A stretch of DNA of 64,000 nt, from sequence record LC494302.1; one strand, given 5' to 3'. The notes under the pieces are model-generated. The model was given only the letters and a program-made list of their open reading frames with translations. It had not been told where the DNA came from and made no database searches. The position numbers and the translations under genes were made by a program. Below, piece by piece: positions 4,211 through 61,459 of the stretch (its first letter is position 1; each line of letters starts with the position of its first letter).

Positions 4211-5059
4211 ATGAAACTTTATCTAATCGTTGACTACAGTAAGGGTTATTATGACTACGCAGAAGAATCTGAAGGGTATTGCTCGTCTACTAATGTCAAT
4301 GTACGCACCAGTAGTACACATGAGCATGAATCTATTACAAACCTAAAAGATTTCATCGCATATCGAGCATTTGAAAAGAATTTCTGTCGTAGTAGATATT
4401 CGAAGTTTGAGTACCCGTTAATTGATGTTCCTGATGAATTGATGTTCCAGTTAATGCTCACTGGAGTACAAGATTATGATTACATCGCGTACAATCACAT
4501 TACTAAGAAAATTTATATCGGTACGTCAACACATGACATTTCTATGTATGCATCATGCCCCGATGATCGAATGAATGATAGAAAATCATACTATAGTGGT
4601 TCAGTTGGTTCAAATGATTCATTAAATGAAAATTTATTCTTTGAGTACGAGTTTGATAATCATCGAGGGAAAAAAGACCGAGAAGATTATTGTACTGAAA
4701 TTGATAGTACCAATGGATATGAAGAAGTGAAAGAAGCGATAATGCCATATATCCTTGACAAGTACTACAAAGATTTTCAGTACTGTAGTAATTTTCTAAT
4801 CCGAAATTCTATCATAATCGGTCGTCAAAGTACTGCATTCTCTAAGTACTACAATGATTCCCCTGTTGCTGAAAATGAAAACTGTAATATTCTCTCAATC
4901 CCACGTGAAGATATGGTATTCATGTTCACATCTTTCATTGAAGATGATGAGTTGTATGTAAAAAACAAGCACAGGTTCATGCCAAGTAAGATTGAGGTTA
5001 TGAGAAGCTTAAGTGCAGATATCTTAACTAATTTCACTGAAAAAACAGAATACAACTGA
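4211..5059 (+). CDS. hypothetical protein
   Basis: 282 aa ORF, GGAG SD. Confidence 0.8.
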   Translation: MKLYLIVDYSKGYYDYAEESEGYCSSTNVNVRTSSTHEHESITNLKDFIAYRAFEKNFCRSRYSKFEYPLIDVPDELMFQLMLTGVQDYDYIAYNHITKKIYIGTSTHDISMYASCPDDRMNDRKSYYSGSVGSNDSLNENLFFEYEFDNHRGKKDREDYCTEIDSTNGYEEVKEAIMPYILDKYYKDFQYCSNFLIRNSIIIGRQSTAFSKYYNDSPVAENENCNILSIPREDMVFMFTSFIEDDELYVKNKHRFMPSKIEVMRSLSADILTNFTEKTEYN

Positions 5060-5085
5060 GACATACCATAAGTTTATGATATAAT
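5058..5085 (+). promoter_or_regulatory. extended -10 promoter (GRACA class) upstream of ncRNA copy 1
   Basis: GAGACA-N16-TATAAT, TGA immediately before the -10. Confidence 0.65.
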
Positions 5086-5087
5086 GT

Positions 5088-5122
5088 AAGGTGACAGCAG
5101 AATATGTTGTCGCCTTTTTTTT
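5088..5122 (+). terminator. intrinsic terminator overlapping the promoter start site
   Basis: AAGGTGACAGCA-gaata-TGTTGTCGCCTT plus T-tract. Confidence 0.75.
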
Positions 5123-5134
5123 AATCCTGAAAGG

Positions 5135-5730
5135 TTCCATATGGAAATGATTAAAGCCTAATCCACTCGAAAAGTAGAGGGTAGATGAGTAGTCCTTTCA
5201 GTACGAACAGCAAATGAAACCCGTTAGATGATGGCATAGTTTGAACCACTCACGGCAATGCGGCTGTATAAAGAACTCCAATAGGATAAAGAGAGTTCCT
5301 CGATAGACATATAAGGATCGCACCTTACCAATTATCTAAGGGAGATTTCATGAGAAATTTGCGGTCGGAATTATACAATATAGTTGCGTCCAAATTTTGT
5401 GAAATCAAATACAAGTACTGGTCATATGGTATTTGTATTATGTGTCGGGATGTTTAAGACCGACGACCGTTGCTACAAGAACCGCGATAGAGAGAAACAG
5501 AGCAACCCGCTTTCGTCTCGTAAGAGAATTCGTGATATGAACTATGTGAAGGCCACCAGCGTCAAACTTTTTTGTTCTTTCCCCTGCGGGGGGATGAAAT
5601 ATGCTCAAGCAAACCCCGTCAATATTAATTAAAAGAAAATAGTACTTGTAGAATTAGACATGCGTAGCATGGTAATTCTACTGATGTTGATGAAATCAAC
5701 GTCACGTATATTCATTGATGTTTCCATAGG
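5135..5730 (+). ncRNA. large structured non-coding RNA, copy 1 (family unassigned)
   Basis: ~600 nt intergenic, GC-enriched; colinear conserved blocks with 60410-61030; compensatory helix GACGA/TCGTC versus AGCGA/TCGCT; 5'/3' closing helix TATGGAAA/TTTCCATA; ends approximate. Confidence 0.8.
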
Positions 5731-5737
5731 AATAATG

Positions 5738-6280
5738 ATGGCATTTATTAGAAAAGAAAAAACTGTTACTTATAAAACTTTGAATTTTGATGATTGCATT
5801 AATCAATCACAAGACGAAGATATCTTTACTGGATATGTGGTTATTAAAGAAAAAGGATGCATTTCTTATATAAAGGAATTGCAAAATGGAATTGAAGTGA
5901 CTTCAGTTAAATTACTTCCTACTCAAAAACCAACAATATCAAAAGCCCAGTATGGTAATTATTTTGAAGAAAGATATAGTAATAATTCAATAAGTGTTAA
6001 GGCTCATATTATTAAAGGAGAACTAGAAGGAGAATATAGAAAATACAACCCACAAGGAAAATGTGTTTGGGTTAAATACTTCAATTCAGGATATGATGTA
6101 ACATCTGAAATTATAGAGTTCTTAGGTTTAAAATGTACCCCTGAGACTATTCATGATTACAAGTTCAATACTGAAGAAGAGTTTAATCTGATGATGCGTT
6201 ACGGTTCACATTTTAAATTTTTATATGAATATAACATTGACAGTAGTACTTTTGATAAGATAGTACACAACTGTCTCTAA
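5738..6280 (+). CDS. hypothetical protein with a MORN-variant-like repeat
   Basis: GELEGEYRKYNPQGKCVWVKYFNSG; start moved to ATG 5738 behind AGGA because the track start (5660) lies in the ncRNA. Confidence 0.65.
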   Translation: MAFIRKEKTVTYKTLNFDDCINQSQDEDIFTGYVVIKEKGCISYIKELQNGIEVTSVKLLPTQKPTISKAQYGNYFEERYSNNSISVKAHIIKGELEGEYRKYNPQGKCVWVKYFNSGYDVTSEIIEFLGLKCTPETIHDYKFNTEEEFNLMMRYGSHFKFLYEYNIDSSTFDKIVHNCL

Positions 6281-9104: not shown

Positions 9105-9406
9105 ATTTAAATGATATACAATTCACTTATAAGATCCTATATGACTTGTATGATACATACCTTGTTAGTAACAAAATAGGTTCACATAACCCATCTAAAG
9201 AACAACAATTTATTGATTTATATATTGAGTACTTAGATTCTATTGAAAACTATCTCAAAAAGAATTACAGTACTTTTATCGATGGAAATGATAAATTCGA
9301 TTTCTATGGTGTACAATCATATAATGGTATAATCCATGTTCAATTTCAGGAAATAACCGATAGGGGATTTATCGAGATTAAAGTTGTGAAGTTGGTGAAT
9401 TTATAA
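9095..9406 (+). CDS. small paralog (TYK array)
   Basis: LNDIQFTYKILYDL. Confidence 0.75.
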   Translation: MVLNLNDIQFTYKILYDLYDTYLVSNKIGSHNPSKEQQFIDLYIEYLDSIENYLKKNYSTFIDGNDKFDFYGVQSYNGIIHVQFQEITDRGFIEIKVVKLVNL

Positions 9407-9416
9407 GAGGTTACAT

Positions 9417-13850: not shown

Positions 13851-14114
13851 ATGAATATTCAAGATAGATTACAATTACTGTACACACTTGAACAGGCTGC
13901 TTATGATCTTGTTCGAAAAATCTCAGATGAACTACCTAAAGGAACTAAAGTTCGTGTACGTGAGATGAATTATTTTTCTGGAGTAATTGAAGAACAAGTA
14001 CTAACAGTGAATAAAGTAACATACTATGAATCTGAGTTGTCTATTCAGTGTGAATCTGATGATGGATTAATATCATATTATGGAACTGATGTAGATATAG
14101 AGGTAATAAAATGA
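13851..14114 (+). CDS. small hypothetical protein (helix plus beta-rich family)
   Basis: ELPKGTKVRV; start reassigned. Confidence 0.7.
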   Translation: MNIQDRLQLLYTLEQAAYDLVRKISDELPKGTKVRVREMNYFSGVIEEQVLTVNKVTYYESELSIQCESDDGLISYYGTDVDIEVIK

Positions 14115-15253
14115 CCCTTTTGCAAATATATGAAGATTTAATGCACTTATGTAATACAAACGATGCATTCTTTTATGTGGATCATAAAAGTCCTGCTGGT
14201 GGCACGTATCGTGTATTCAGTTATCGTCTAGCATCATACACTGATTTCATGCAACCAAATGCGTTGGAAACCCGTGGCTCTATGTGGGAAATTGATGAAG
14301 AAGGTGACATGATACGTTGTGCAGCACGTACAATGAAAAAGTTCTTCAATGCTTACGAGAATCCTGCTACAATGTTCCCTGCTAACACCACATGCGATGA
14401 CATTGCGGTAGTGATGCCTAAGTTGGATGGCTCGATCATCAGTACTTATCGTGATAATGATGGTGAGATTCGTTGTAAATCACATACTGCATTGTATTCT
14501 GACCATGCGATTAACAGCACTCGACTTATTAACGAGAACCAGAATTTGTATCAGTACATCGACGAAGCGGAACGTTTAGGTTACACAGTTAATATGGAGT
14601 ATACAAGCCCAGAGTACCGAATTGTATTACCATATCAGGTAGAACAACTGTTTGTACTGAACGTTCGTCATCGTGTGAGTGGTGAGTTGCTTTGTGGTAA
14701 AGCACTACGTGATAAGTTTCCATGTCTTGCACAGTACAGTACTAATATGACTGGAAAAGATATTCATCACACTTTTCCGGTACGAAATACCTTCCGTGAA
14801 AGCGTGGAGGAAGTTCATAAAATGCTTGATATTGAGGGTTTTGTGTGCATCCTAAATAATGGGACAATGTGTAAAATAAAGACTGACTGGTACAGTTCAT
14901 TACATCTTACAAAAGATAGTATTATTATTGATTCTCATTTATATGAAGCAGTATTAAATGGTTCAAGTGATGATTTAAAACAATTGTTCAGTACTGATGA
15001 ATATGCTATGCAAAAGATATTAAGAATGGAACAATTGGTATTTTCGTGCTATAATGCATTACAAGATGAAGTAGAAAGCTTCGTCAAGGAACACAAGCAC
15101 TTGGAGCGAAAGGAATTCGCAATGAAGGTTCAGGAGTGTTTAACTAATGAACTGAATCGTCAGGGCTTGGCCTTTGCAATGTATAACAATAAGAAAGTTG
15201 ATTACAAAGAGACTCTTATAAAATACATGAAAATTGTACTAAAGGATTTTTAG
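14111..15253 (+). CDS. rnlA: RNA ligase 1 (T4 gp63/RnlA-like)
   Basis: MKKFFN, motif I PKLDGS, NMEY, EGFV, KIKTDWY..LH. Confidence 0.93.
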   Translation: MTLLQIYEDLMHLCNTNDAFFYVDHKSPAGGTYRVFSYRLASYTDFMQPNALETRGSMWEIDEEGDMIRCAARTMKKFFNAYENPATMFPANTTCDDIAVVMPKLDGSIISTYRDNDGEIRCKSHTALYSDHAINSTRLINENQNLYQYIDEAERLGYTVNMEYTSPEYRIVLPYQVEQLFVLNVRHRVSGELLCGKALRDKFPCLAQYSTNMTGKDIHHTFPVRNTFRESVEEVHKMLDIEGFVCILNNGTMCKIKTDWYSSLHLTKDSIIIDSHLYEAVLNGSSDDLKQLFSTDEYAMQKILRMEQLVFSCYNALQDEVESFVKEHKHLERKEFAMKVQECLTNELNRQGLAFAMYNNKKVDYKETLIKYMKIVLKDF

Positions 15254-25544: not shown

Positions 25545-25556
25545 TGAGAGGATATT

Positions 25557-25940
25557 GTGTCATTAATTTATTTTGAACTACCAGAATATACCAATTATCC
25601 AAGCCGAGTTATTTGCTCAGTTTATAGTAATGCATATCATCACTTGTTAGTGAATAGTAATAAAGCTGTGCATTATTATCGAAATAAAGAACCACGTACA
25701 TTAAAGAATCGTTATGGGTTTGACCCAACTAACACTGAAGTTGAACTCTGTGATCTGTTCGGGGAAGTAATGGTGGTGTTGAAACGAGATATTCATCTTT
25801 TCCATACATACAAACTTAATCAGTACTTTATGGAAACACTGTCTATACGTTCCCATGCTCCGATGATTAAAGTTGATTTGAATTATGTTGATGATAAATT
25901 GAAATATGATTTCATTAATTCACTTGTTTATTTGGAGTAA
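25557..25940 (+). CDS. hypothetical protein
   Basis: 127 aa; GAGG SD. Confidence 0.7.
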   Translation: MSLIYFELPEYTNYPSRVICSVYSNAYHHLLVNSNKAVHYYRNKEPRTLKNRYGFDPTNTEVELCDLFGEVMVVLKRDIHLFHTYKLNQYFMETLSIRSHAPMIKVDLNYVDDKLKYDFINSLVYLE

Positions 25941-58613: not shown

Positions 58614-58918
58614 AAAAATTATTAGTTCCGTTTATTTCTTTTTTAATTATAAGTGGGTGTGCCGAACAAGTAAAACTACAATCCCCTGCACCAATTAAAC
58701 AAGAAATTCTGTTAGAAAGATGTGATGATGATACACCTCTACCACAAAAAATTATGATTGACAAAAATGGTTTTAAAGGTTATGATGGTGCAGAAATTCT
58801 TAAAGTACTTACTCGTTGGGATGCAGTCTACAATGAATGTGCTTTAAAACATGACGCATTGATTAAAACTATTCGTGATTTACAAGGTAAAGATATTAAA
58901 ATCAATATCAAGGAATAA
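58610..58918 (+). CDS. o-spanin (Rz1-like lipoprotein)
   Basis: lipobox ISGC, LLERC..PLP, YNECALKHDALI. Confidence 0.72.
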   Translation: MKKLLVPFISFLIISGCAEQVKLQSPAPIKQEILLERCDDDTPLPQKIMIDKNGFKGYDGAEILKVLTRWDAVYNECALKHDALIKTIRDLQGKDIKINIKE

Positions 58919-58919
58919 A

Positions 58920-59531
58920 ATGAACAAATATCATGTTTACTATACGACAAAATTATCACTTCTTGAAGAATTAAATCAACGAAGTACTAAGATGAAACGC
59001 TACACTTTAAATGGTATTACTTTTCGATATTTCCCACAAAAAGTTCTTACTTTTGTTAAGAATCCAAAATGCGTGGCATGTGGGATTGAAGCTACTGAAG
59101 TACGCATTGAACGTTCATTATGTTCTGATCCAGTATATGGTAAACCACATTTAAATGTATATGCTGTATGTGGTCTTTATGAAGTTTTAATGACAGTTGA
59201 CCATAATCATCTGGCATCTAAGGGTGGACCTGATTTAGAGTCAAACTTTAATACTATGTGCTCCAGATGTAATCAACTACGTTCGAATAAAACTGAAACA
59301 GTTGATGAGTTTCTTGAAAAAGTTAAAGGTCGTAATCTTCTCCAAGAACATATGAATAATTTCTTTAATGTACAAAAAAAGAAAAATAACATTGACAAGT
59401 CGAAACTACTAGAAGAACGTAGGTTACGTCAAGAATTATGGGAAACCGATCATCTATGGCATGTTCGAGAGTTTGGTCGTCATATGAAAGCTTTGAAAAA
59501 AGAACAGAAGAAATTGAATAAACATGATTGA
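58920..59531 (+). CDS. HNH endonuclease-like protein
   Basis: CVACG ... TVDHNHLASKGG...NFNTMCSRCN; start reassigned behind AAGGA. Confidence 0.8.
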   Translation: MNKYHVYYTTKLSLLEELNQRSTKMKRYTLNGITFRYFPQKVLTFVKNPKCVACGIEATEVRIERSLCSDPVYGKPHLNVYAVCGLYEVLMTVDHNHLASKGGPDLESNFNTMCSRCNQLRSNKTETVDEFLEKVKGRNLLQEHMNNFFNVQKKKNNIDKSKLLEERRLRQELWETDHLWHVREFGRHMKALKKEQKKLNKHD

Positions 59532-59941: not shown

Positions 59942-60340
59942 ATGCTTAAAGAATTAGATTTTTCAAACTTAGAAATTATCAGTGCTGTAAAAAACATTTC
60001 CGATATGGGAGATGAGAAAGCAGTTCTTGTTACTATTACTTTTGTAAAAGAAAAAGATAGCTATAGCCATTTAACTGGTATTGAAGAACTAATTCATAAA
60101 ACCAATCTTGAGAATGATGGTAAACTCATCAAGCTTCAGGCTTCATATACGCAAAAAACGTCAAATTTTATAGACCTAAATAATGTAGTCAAGGTGGTAT
60201 ACAATCATCCTGAACACACATATAGGAACACGACAAGAAATGAAAATGTTGCTAACGATTCGAATATTATCGAAGATGTTGAATTCATAAACACAATTTT
60301 TGATCGTTGTTCTAAGGATTTAAAAAAAGTATACATGTAA
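59942..60340 (+). CDS. hypothetical protein
   Basis: 132 aa. Confidence 0.75.
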   Translation: MLKELDFSNLEIISAVKNISDMGDEKAVLVTITFVKEKDSYSHLTGIEELIHKTNLENDGKLIKLQASYTQKTSNFIDLNNVVKVVYNHPEHTYRNTTRNENVANDSNIIEDVEFINTIFDRCSKDLKKVYM

Positions 60341-60341
60341 T

Positions 60342-60369
60342 GGGACATTATATGTTCCAATGATATAAT
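60342..60369 (+). promoter_or_regulatory. extended -10 promoter (GRACA class) upstream of ncRNA copy 2
   Basis: GGGACA-N16-TATAAT; imperfect inverted repeat TGGGACAT/ATGTTCCA. Confidence 0.72.
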
Positions 60370-60409
60370 GTATATAGAAAATGACAACGGACATTGAAAA
60401 ATGGACACT

Positions 60410-61030
60410 GAGAACCTACTTCTCTTGAAAATGTAAAGGATAGATGAGCTTTACCGTTGTAGCGAACAGCAGAAGAAACCTGTTAGAGTACTGGCATTCA
60501 AACAAACACGATGTAAGACCACGAATCACGGCGACACGGCTGTATAAAGAACTCCGATAAGCATACAGAGAGTTCCTAGATAGATGTATAAGGTTCGCAC
60601 CTTACCAGATTTGCTAAGGGAGTTCAAGGATAGCGGACGCAATTTTTACAAGAAAGTTGCGTCCAAAATTTGAGAACAAGTACTACTTTGATCGAATAGA
60701 GTTAGTACTGAGTGCTGTTGATGAAAAGACCAGCGACCGTTGCATATGACTGCGATAGAGAGAAACCGAGCAACCCGCTTTCGCTCTCTAAATTTTGGTA
60801 CAAGAAAGATCCGTCCAAAATTTGAGAAATTCGCAATTCGATAATATCCGATGCCATCATCGTCAAGAGAGACTTAATTGTCTCTTTTTTATTACCTTCA
60901 TTCCCCTGTGGGGGGATGTAATAGTCCTCAACAAATCCCGTCAAGTTTTTAAAGTACATTATCATTTTCAGAAGGAACTAGTTTACGAAGTAAACGCAGT
61001 GACTTCTTGAGTTACGAGAGAACGAAGTGA
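60410..61030 (+). ncRNA. large structured non-coding RNA, copy 2 (family unassigned)
   Basis: colinear homology with 5135-5730; multiple hairpins; no credible ORF; ends approximate. Confidence 0.8.
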
Positions 61031-61459
61031 ATGAGTAACACAACGAAAATATCCGATAAATCCGAATTAACACAAATGTTATTCAAAGAATATTTTGAGT
61101 TTCAGATAAAAGACGAACATCAATTACCACAGCAATATTTGAAAAGAATTAAAGATCCGTCAGTAATTACTAAAGAAACTAATTTTTATAATAGTATTTT
61201 GGATTTCGTTAAATCAGTTCATACAACAAGACCTATTGTAGTTTTGTTTTTTGATAAATCTATTCCTTTAGTAGTTCCTGAAAATGTATTTTTTATTTCA
61301 GAAACTGATTTAAATAATCAAAGTACTGTAAGTAGATTAAGAAATTGCTTACTTGTAGTATGTGATTCTTCTTTGTATAATAACAGAATACTATGGGATA
61401 GAAGTAAACGCAATGCAGTTTCTGAAATGAATCCTGAAATTACCTTTATTATTAACTAA
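61031..61459 (+). CDS. hypothetical protein
   Basis: 142 aa. Confidence 0.7.
   Translation: MSNTTKISDKSELTQMLFKEYFEFQIKDEHQLPQQYLKRIKDPSVITKETNFYNSILDFVKSVHTTRPIVVLFFDKSIPLVVPENVFFISETDLNNQSTVSRLRNCLLVVCDSSLYNNRILWDRSKRNAVSEMNPEITFIIN

Follow-up and report, generated by a model that had tools for sequence, protein, structure and literature searches.

What is encoded in two gaps poor in open reading frames (ORFs) within the genome of Escherichia phage SP27, a 347-kb Asteriusvirus belonging to the RaK2-like, T4-related jumbo myoviruses? The DNA analysed here, a stretch of 64,000 nucleotides (nt) hereafter called the window, is identical to positions 186,001-250,000 of the SP27 record (LC494302.1). 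Its first gap (5060-5737) is bounded by an ORF at 4211-5059 and by the next gene, with an ATG at ~5735, and its second (60341-61030) by ORFs at 59942-60340 and 61031-61459. A reading made from the letters of the window without database searches (the sequence-only reading) had taken these non-coding gaps of ~600 nt for a diverged pair of large structured phage RNAs. Our analysis reveals that both loci are paralogous genes of a previously undescribed, pseudoknot-rich family of non-coding RNA, and that each is its own + strand unit behind a sigma-70 extended -10 promoter (TGnTATAAT). That the product is a structured RNA we regard as virtually certain.

Several properties of the gaps that the sequence-only reading had described were borne out. 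The ORFs inside them are short (at most 87 amino acids [aa]) and unconserved, and the two loci share colinear blocks, with blastn aligning 388 nt at 73% identity (E 2.6e-44) plus a second block, and with colinearity displayed in a MAFFT alignment. The window contains precisely two instances of a 32-nt core, GCGATAGAGAGAAACNGAGCAACCCGCTTTCG, for an expected number of zero. GC content is likewise enriched, at 41.4% for copy 1 (the first gap) and 41.2% for copy 2 (the second); the window as a whole averages 33.3%, and its 500-nt segments have their 95th percentile at 38.6%. Other candidates from the window were set aside: two further ORF-poor gaps (9105-9416 and 25545-25905) resemble ordinary coding sequence, GTAC/AGTACT enrichment is no higher than the window background, and a small ORF following GGGGGGATG has its frame shifted by indels, being reduced to ATG-TAA in copy 2. 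In related GenBank records, one to six "hypothetical protein" coding sequences (in one case a "methylase") are annotated over both loci (5060-5740 and 60341-61035); given the covariation described below, and since no ORF is conserved, such annotations are likely to be spurious.

The case for a structured RNA is carried by covariation in an alignment of 44 distinct sequences, with the 3' domain also followed in 74 sequences that include bacterial members and those of a diverged subfamily (subfamily 2, see below). RNAalifold predicted 71 pairs from the 44 sequences, 45 of them with compensatory change, and the final model, built from a helix scan and inspection, comprises 17 helices and 93 pairs. 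In this model, 95.9% of cells are paired, a share that drops to 76% after column shuffling and to 38-41% once partners are displaced by 1-3 columns; both sides change in 68 of the 93 pairs (756 cells), a level reached by none of 500 shuffles, and the covariation score is 0.54 versus 0.08-0.10. For the 3' domain in 74 sequences, 91.3% of cells are paired versus 38-46%, and the internal hairpin preceding a U-run also covaries there. G·U pairs outnumber A·C mismatches by 280 to 23, which identifies the + strand as the functional RNA. Invariant columns number 104, of which 69 are unpaired in the model, and AAGGGA is invariant in all 44 sequences.

The model contains four pseudoknots (P1, PK2, P9, and P11), each formed by pairing between the loop of a hairpin, or an internal loop, and a strand further away. 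Compensatory change affects seven of the eight pairs of P1, all five of P2, seven of eight in P3, and two of three in P4, while PK2 covaries as G-C in 33 sequences and A-U in 11. P9 is 98-99.7% paired with five to six of its seven pairs covarying, and P11, P12, and P13 are 99.5-100% paired in both the 44 and the 74 sequences. P15 combines an invariant G-run with a C strand that changes only from C to U. Beyond the helices, an optional module of ~40 nt is present or absent among homologues and shifts in position, and a CGUCAG motif is duplicated, its two copies bracketing a hairpin segment.

Among the pairings proposed by the sequence-only reading, the helices GTTGC/GCAAC, GAACTC/GAGTTC, TAAGG/CCTTA, and ACAGC/GCTGT, as well as the variable hairpin at the same position in both copies, all covary in the 44 sequences. 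Its leading example of covariation did not hold: the outer pairs of the GACGA (5462-66)/TCGTC (5513-17) helix are canonical in only 16 and 23 of the 44 sequences, and its bases belong instead to P10 and P13. The suggested pairing of the ends, TATGGAAA/TTTCCATA, is confined to copy 1, where TATGGAAA falls within the P2 palindrome and its 3' partner in unconserved flank. Also discarded, for want of covariation or because they failed in some clades, were a GACGA-loop-UCGUC hairpin, which is 57% paired, a GAUAG/CUAUC helix, and a long-range GAC/GUC pairing that RNAalifold had proposed and that does not persist in subfamily 2.

The extended -10 element TGnTATAAT stands at the same distance from the RNA in all 53 full-length homologues, and a promoter scan of both window copies detected TG-TATAAT accompanied by a weak -35, in keeping with the earlier proposal that the element has its own promoter. 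From the predicted start to the closing motif, members of the family measure 478-572 nt; within the window, the conserved RNA spans ~5092/5122-5623 and 60377-60946, in place of the 5135-5730 and 60410-61030 originally delimited. Copy 1 begins with a terminator-like stem-loop at which the transcript of the upstream gene may also terminate, and several paralogue lineages have a counterpart of this 5' hairpin, in some cases together with a U-run. Within the RNA tail, approximately 20 of the 44 copies contain a covarying hairpin followed by a U-run, in which five of six pairs covary where it is present; copy 2 has this terminator-like hairpin and copy 1 does not. The parts of copy 1 are as follows.

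5058..5085, + strand: promoter, with -35-like GAGACA (5058-5063) and extended -10 TGATATAAT (5077-5085)
~5088-5093, + strand: predicted start
5088..5124, + strand: 5' stem-loop, terminator-like, AAGGTGACAGC...GTTGTCGCCTT then a T-run, beginning near the predicted start
5122..5623, + strand: conserved body, AATCCTGAAAGG to CAAACCCCGTCAA, ~533 nt when counted from the predicted start
5127-5134 / 5194-5201, + strand: P1, CTGAAAGG / CCTTTCAG, 5' pseudoknot (5127..5204) into the P4 loop
5135-5146 and 5158-5184, + strand: P2 and P3, between the P1 strands
5189-5191 / 5202-5204, + strand: P4, GTA/TAC
5207..5327, + strand: central domain with P5, P6, PK2, P7, and P8
5207-11 / 5263-67, + strand: P5, ACAGC/GCTGT
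5221-24 / 5252-55, + strand: P6, CCGT/ACGG
5258-60 / 5308-10, + strand: PK2, ATG/CAT
5273-78 / 5293-98, + strand: P7, GAACTC/GAGTTC
5312-15 / 5324-27, + strand: P8, TAAG/CTTA
5336-5344, + strand: invariant CTAAGGGAG
5358-5399, + strand: optional ~40-nt module, TTTGCGGTCGGAATTATACAATATAGTTGCGTCCAAATTTTG
5408..5541, + strand: 3' domain with Pv and P9-P14
5408-19 / 5428-39, + strand: Pv, the variable hairpin
5421-27 / 5535-41, + strand: P9 pseudoknot, Pv loop GTCATAT with ATATGAA
~5443-5465, + strand: P10
5469-73 / 5502-06, + strand: P11, GTTGC/GCAAC, pseudoknot into the P13 loop
5483-87 / 5530-34, + strand: P12, CGCGA/TCGTG
5490-94 / 5510-14, + strand: P13, GAGAG/CTTTC
~5517-5526, + strand: P14
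5560..5622, + strand: 3' tail, with the first CGTCAA at 5560-65 and a T-run at 5569-74
5581-5593, + strand: P15, CCCC-TGC-GGGGGG
5610-5622, + strand: closing motif CAAACCCCGTCAA

Copy 2 shares this layout, with an internal 36-nt direct repeat (60641-60676 and 60791-60828, 89% identical) that corresponds to the optional module occurring twice; in other homologues, the module is located at either site, at both, or at neither.

60342..60369, + strand: promoter, with GGGACA (60342-47) and extended -10 TGATATAAT (60361-69)
~60376-60377, + strand: predicted start
60379..60946, + strand: conserved body, ~572 nt when counted from the predicted start
60384-91 / 60453-60, + strand: P1, ACAACGGA/ACCGTTGT, in the same place as P1 of copy 1
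60448-50 / 60461-63, + strand: P4
60466-70 / 60539-43, + strand: P5
60480-83 / 60528-31, + strand: P6
60534-36 / 60585-87, + strand: PK2
60549-54 / 60570-75, + strand: P7
60589-92 / 60601-04, + strand: P8
60614-60622, + strand: invariant CTAAGGGAG
60630..60674, + strand: optional module, first instance, 3' of CTAAGGGAG
60679-89 / 60698-709, + strand: Pv
60691-97 / 60836-42, + strand: P9
60739-43 / 60770-74, + strand: P11
60751-55 / 60831-35, + strand: P12
60758-62 / 60778-82, + strand: P13
60785-88 / 60824-27, + strand: P14
60793..60826, + strand: optional module, second instance, within the P14 loop
60861..60945, + strand: 3' tail, with CGTCAA at 60861-66
60869-60890, + strand: terminator-like hairpin, GAGAC-TTAATT-GTCTC followed by T6
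60903-60915, + strand: P15, CCCC-TGT-GGGGGG
60932-60945, + strand: closing motif CAAATCCCGTCAAG

Further 3' of the RNA, a separate TTGACA-N17-TAnnnT promoter could be read from the alignment in many phage copies; the RNA genes therefore adjoin early-type promoters, lying upstream of them. This downstream promoter, of canonical sigma-70 type and with an upstream element rich in A/T, reads AAAATTCTTGACN-N17-TAnnnT (alignment A3, columns ~815-860) and is exemplified at loci L050:3020-3609(-) and L033:2233-2824(+); at window copy 1 it is degenerate (ATTCATTGATG, 5709-5719).

Does the RNA belong to a family already described? To our knowledge, few large, highly structured RNAs are known from bacteria and phages, namely rRNA, RNase P, introns, transfer-messenger RNA (tmRNA), OLE, GOLLD, ROOL, and raiA. 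The whole window was scanned against the 4,227 families of Rfam 15 at the gathering threshold, and copy 1, copy 2, an Escherichia coli copy, and subfamily 2 were scanned at E<=10; no match was obtained in the former, and noise alone in the latter. The RNA is thus not ROOL, GOLLD, OLE, HEARO, an intron, RNase P, tmRNA, or any other curated family, which, together with the overwhelming covariation, upholds the new class that the sequence-only reading had offered as one option, while its other option, a distant relative of ROOL/GOLLD, finds no support in Rfam. ARAGORN identified no tRNA or tmRNA genes in the 64-kb window. Group I and group II introns are further contradicted by flanking ORFs that are complete and unrelated between the copies. 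The literature searched on RaK2-like phages, jumbo-phage non-coding RNAs, ROOL/GOLLD, and transcriptomes, including the papers on phages CBB and fEgEco12, does not mention this RNA. Four RNA-seq-defined non-coding transcripts of 236-619 nt (ncRNA001-004) have been reported for the jumbo phage PA5oct, a distant relative of the RaK2 group (PMC7318152). As homologues these were rejected, with nhmmer giving only noise at E<=10 and the signature motif set absent, save for isolated chance matches to short motifs.

How widely is the family distributed? A local search of the entire SP27 genome located four copies, all on the + strand, at ~89.0, 191.1, 246.4, and 325.3 kb, of which window copies 1 and 2 are copies B and C, respectively; RaK2-like jumbo phages carry 3-5 per genome. 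The idea of a diverged pair thus survives as regards paralogy and fails as regards number. In SP27, a 2-kb region without an annotated gene amid many very small ORFs (132.5-134.6 kb; L003:32548-34554) has no homology to the family by nhmmer. With blastn, the element was found in 62-72 GenBank phage records, at 3-5 places each except for a few that match the conserved core only, from phages recorded on Escherichia, Salmonella, Klebsiella, Cronobacter, Erwinia, Pectobacterium, Serratia, Yersinia, and "Xanthomonas." Pattern scans followed by a profile hidden Markov model recovered 53 full-length copies (45 distinct) from IMG/VR. In nhmmer, copy 1 scored E 5e-125, copy 2 E 4e-131, and the full-length copy of RaK2 itself E 2e-42. 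In the latter phage (L066, NC_019526.1 190748-192596), the RNA lies directly 3' of a gene annotated as an RNA polymerase sigma factor, while the core of the RNA is overlapped by ORF245, an annotated ORF of 68 aa.

A degenerate core pattern yielded 72 true loci in metagenomes. Chance pattern matches were discarded after nhmmer, numbering 13 across the genome and metagenome scans and six among the viral ones. Subfamily 2 was recognized among these metagenomic loci; its members retain the promoter (TGTTATAAT) and the 3' core, have a different 5' domain, and have both CGUCAG motifs replaced together by CGAAG. Its contigs are T4-like, with genes for portal gp20, baseplate, and a Dda-like helicase as neighbours, and no cultured representative was found among GenBank phages.

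L115, L120, L125, L144, L146, L147, L158, L159, L170: subfamily 2 members, on metagenome contigs

The same degenerate pattern detected four true copies in bacterial genomes (a Serratia fonticola chromosome, Serratia sp., Silvania hatchlandensis, and an Enterobacteriaceae metagenome-assembled genome), and a canonical copy (E 3e-121) is present in 2 of 5,426 complete E. coli genomes, within a 10-kb island at ffs. A single copy is present in each of the integrase-bearing islands or prophages of Escherichia, Serratia, and Silvania, and none of 72,556 plasmids carries the RNA. The description as a phage RNA accordingly stands insofar as it is a large structured non-coding RNA of phages, and falls insofar as it implied confinement to them.

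L092 (Serratia fonticola NZ_CP183218.1), L090, L089, L086: full-length bacterial homologues, within integrated elements
L094, E. coli LR-29-1 (NZ_AP027515.1), locus 14002-14583: copy in a tyrosine-integrase island at ffs

A tree of the family resolves five paralogue lineages that are common to several genera, each with one member per genome, a pattern covering phages of Yersinia, Serratia, Cronobacter, and Pectobacterium as well as metagenomic relatives. Copies B, C, and D of Asteriusvirus are lineage-specific duplicates, with B and C on long branches, and alternative P5/P6 inserts are mixed across the paralogue lineages. The maintenance of 4-5 ancient paralogues in each jumbo phage argues against simple redundancy among the copies.

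The genes flanking the phage copies differ from copy to copy, and the flanks of window copies 1 and 2 and of copy D are unrelated to each other. Downstream of copy 1 are Dam methylase and cytidyltransferase genes; copy 2 has HNH endonuclease and DUF7325 genes upstream and a Dps-like gene downstream, whereas copy D is flanked by - strand genes. The HNH endonuclease gene (window 58875-59531) is situated 0.8 kb upstream of the copy 2 promoter, and an endonuclease VII gene (L006:26644-27135) immediately upstream of copy D on the opposite strand; across the family, nuclease genes show no consistent association with the RNA. Bacterial copies occur close to one end of integrated elements. A large serine recombinase gene is found directly 5' of the RNA in Silvania and Serratia sp.; the S. 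fonticola element, inserted at rof, has the RNA on the far side of two ParB/RepB-like genes; and in E. coli, an integrase and the candidate defence system PDC-M45 accompany it on the island. Beside the S. fonticola element, which adjoins tilS, are two nearly identical 87-aa ROF (Rho-off) genes (L092:4775-5038 and 5227-5490), and it appears that the element (recombinase, two ParB-like genes, and RNA) was inserted at rof and duplicated it. Bacterial neighbours thus vary from large serine recombinases and ParB/RepB-like proteins to a CI repressor and PDC-M45 defence genes, and an all-against-all blastp comparison revealed no neighbour common between the bacterial loci. At the three large-serine-recombinase loci (L089, L090, and L092), the next gene is convergent. 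This layout of own promoter, gene, and terminator is that of a moron-like accessory gene.

What, then, does the RNA do? It is under strong purifying selection as a structured + strand RNA across several kinds of mobile element, and convergent next genes, differing neighbours, and the absence of a common neighbour protein point to action in trans without a fixed partner; a stand-alone, trans-acting role is therefore probable. Extending this, the reading that we favour, with some reserve, is that the folded RNA stands alone, acts in trans, and travels as accessory cargo of mobile elements. Host sigma-70 RNA polymerase is proposed to transcribe the RNA from early in infection; the -35 contact, which T4-type AsiA proteins block, is one that extended -10 promoters can dispense with. 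The RNA would then work in trans as a stable folded molecule by means of its invariant core, either as a catalyst or by offering a conserved component of the host a scaffold or decoy. Such moron-like cargo would aid its carrier element during infection or in conflicts between elements.

Several points weigh against this proposal. Single-sequence folding is only modestly better than shuffles (z of -2.1 and -3.2), and the structured-RNA case is founded on covariation and not on thermodynamics. Conservation runs ~60 nt past the terminator-like hairpin, leaving the real 3' end of the RNA uncertain, and three of the four SP27 copies (A, B, and C) precede co-oriented + strand genes, where a cis role may apply. 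The literature on RaK2-like phages yielded no expression data, and transcript ends, abundance, and stability are all inferred. Finally, decoy, scaffold, and catalyst together describe a class of candidate mechanisms and not a demonstrated one.

We do not think that the loci represent an mRNA leader, a replication origin, or a protein gene. As a cis-acting leader, the nascent RNA would modify its own polymerase (i.e., put-type antitermination) or act as a riboswitch-like attenuator, in either case governing the downstream co-oriented gene array. The single orientation of the four SP27 copies, the + strand genes that follow three of them, and a terminator-like hairpin inside a region whose conservation continues beyond it would suit such a role, and the put/EAR elements of HK022 are similarly positioned, just 3' of an early promoter and 5' of a terminator and long operons. 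However, put/EAR elements are 70-120 nt and strictly cis-acting, and ~500 nt with four pseudoknots is far above the size of any known antitermination RNA; moreover, the family also occurs as a stand-alone gene facing convergent genes at all three bacterial large-serine-recombinase loci, copy D sits between - strand genes, many phage copies have the canonical promoter of their own 3' of the RNA, and about half of the copies lack the hairpin. A leader is thus unlikely. Alternatively, the copies could mark origins at which DNA synthesis is primed from a persistent R-loop made by the structured transcript, as for ColE1 RNA II and T4 oriF/oriG, which are likewise promoter-driven, structured, several hundred nt long, and, in T4-type genomes, present as several dispersed copies. 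T4-type phages use several transcript-dependent origins, and in SP27 the four copies are spread over 347 kb (at 89, 191, 246, and 325 kb) in one orientation; the phage encodes RNase HI, ParB/RepB-like genes stand beside the RNA in one bacterial element, and the G-run, U-run, and C-run are reminiscent of RNA II. Cumulative GC skew follows gene strand only, with no inflection at the RNA loci, a result that is uninformative about origins. Absence from all plasmids searched, an E. coli island devoid of replication genes, and a core with 69 invariant unpaired bases and four pseudoknots, conserved far beyond the needs of a primer, make an origin transcript improbable.

A mobile or self-processing ribozyme, or the remnant of one, would be an intron-like or selfish RNA spreading between phages and islands, as might be suspected from the unrelated mobile contexts, the modules and inserts shuffled between paralogue lineages, the HNH endonuclease gene 1.5 kb upstream of copy 2 and the endonuclease VII gene beside copy D, and the duplicated CGUCAG around a hairpin segment. 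Group I, group II, and small-ribozyme models nonetheless give no score at E<=10, no host gene is split at any copy, and the paralogues are ancient, positionally stable, and not polymorphic; we hold this to be very unlikely. Membership of ROOL (RF03087) or GOLLD (RF01998) as a distant branch we deem more remote still. Like the SP27 RNA, these are large (at least ~500 nt), phage-linked, and rich in helices and pseudoknots, and are stand-alone phage or prophage genes of unassigned function without an obligatory protein neighbour; yet 17 helices and four pseudoknots in 478-572 nt amount to a resemblance in kind and not to evidence of homology, given that neither the window copies, the canonical E. 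coli copy, nor subfamily 2 matches them at the gathering threshold or at E<=10. ROOL and GOLLD often adjoin tRNA genes, whereas the SP27 tRNA cluster (72-77 kb) is not adjacent to the nearest RNA copy (89 kb). They are found in Firmicutes and rumen or lake taxa as opposed to Enterobacterales and their T4-like phages, and a further difference is that the present RNA is kept as 4-5 diverged paralogues per genome. From cryogenic electron microscopy (cryo-EM), ROOL and GOLLD are reported to form homo-oligomeric, RNA-only cages or assemblies (bioRxiv 10.1101/2024.12.08.627333). The phi29 pRNA is also an abundant structured phage RNA with a strong early promoter that acts in trans, via loop-loop pairing, but it is ~170 nt, single-copy, and assembles an intermolecular ring, while the loop-strand helices of the SP27 RNA match within each molecule; nothing points to a packaging role, and the bacterial islands carry the RNA without a packaging motor. 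Lastly, the loci might not encode an RNA at all; they could be the remains of a protein gene or a repeat acting at the DNA level, for instance an array of binding sites, and the short hypothetical proteins in GenBank records could be cited in favour. With no conserved ORF and every reading frame broken by indels, this is effectively refuted by compensatory changes in 68 of 93 pairs and by the strand-specific excess of G·U over A·C.

A bolder reading is conceivable, though we advance it only tentatively: the family may constitute a new type of self-sufficient RNA, either a new ribozyme class or an RNA-only assembly or decoy directed against host defences or rival phages. If so, the phage paralogues would be specialised variants, and the island and prophage copies would be the same weapon or its countermeasure.

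Ultimately, our analysis describes a new RNA family without detectable relatives, belonging to a broad kind, the large ornate non-coding RNAs of phages and bacteria, that is already known, and distinguished by its multi-copy paralogy, its hosts, and its occurrence in both jumbo phages and enterobacterial islands. Hypothetical-protein annotations at these loci in GenBank phage records will need to be replaced. Large structured RNAs have each proved informative on RNA architecture or biology, and in this respect a family with over 70 distinct sequences, four pseudoknots proven by covariation, and an invariant core of unusual size provides a resource. As the RNA is present in culturable coliphages, one of which is listed on E. 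coli K-12 MG1655, genetics, chemical probing of structure (SHAPE), and cryo-EM are feasible. Its defence-island and prophage contexts raise the possibility that this family is an RNA-based player in the conflicts among phages, hosts, and mobile elements.

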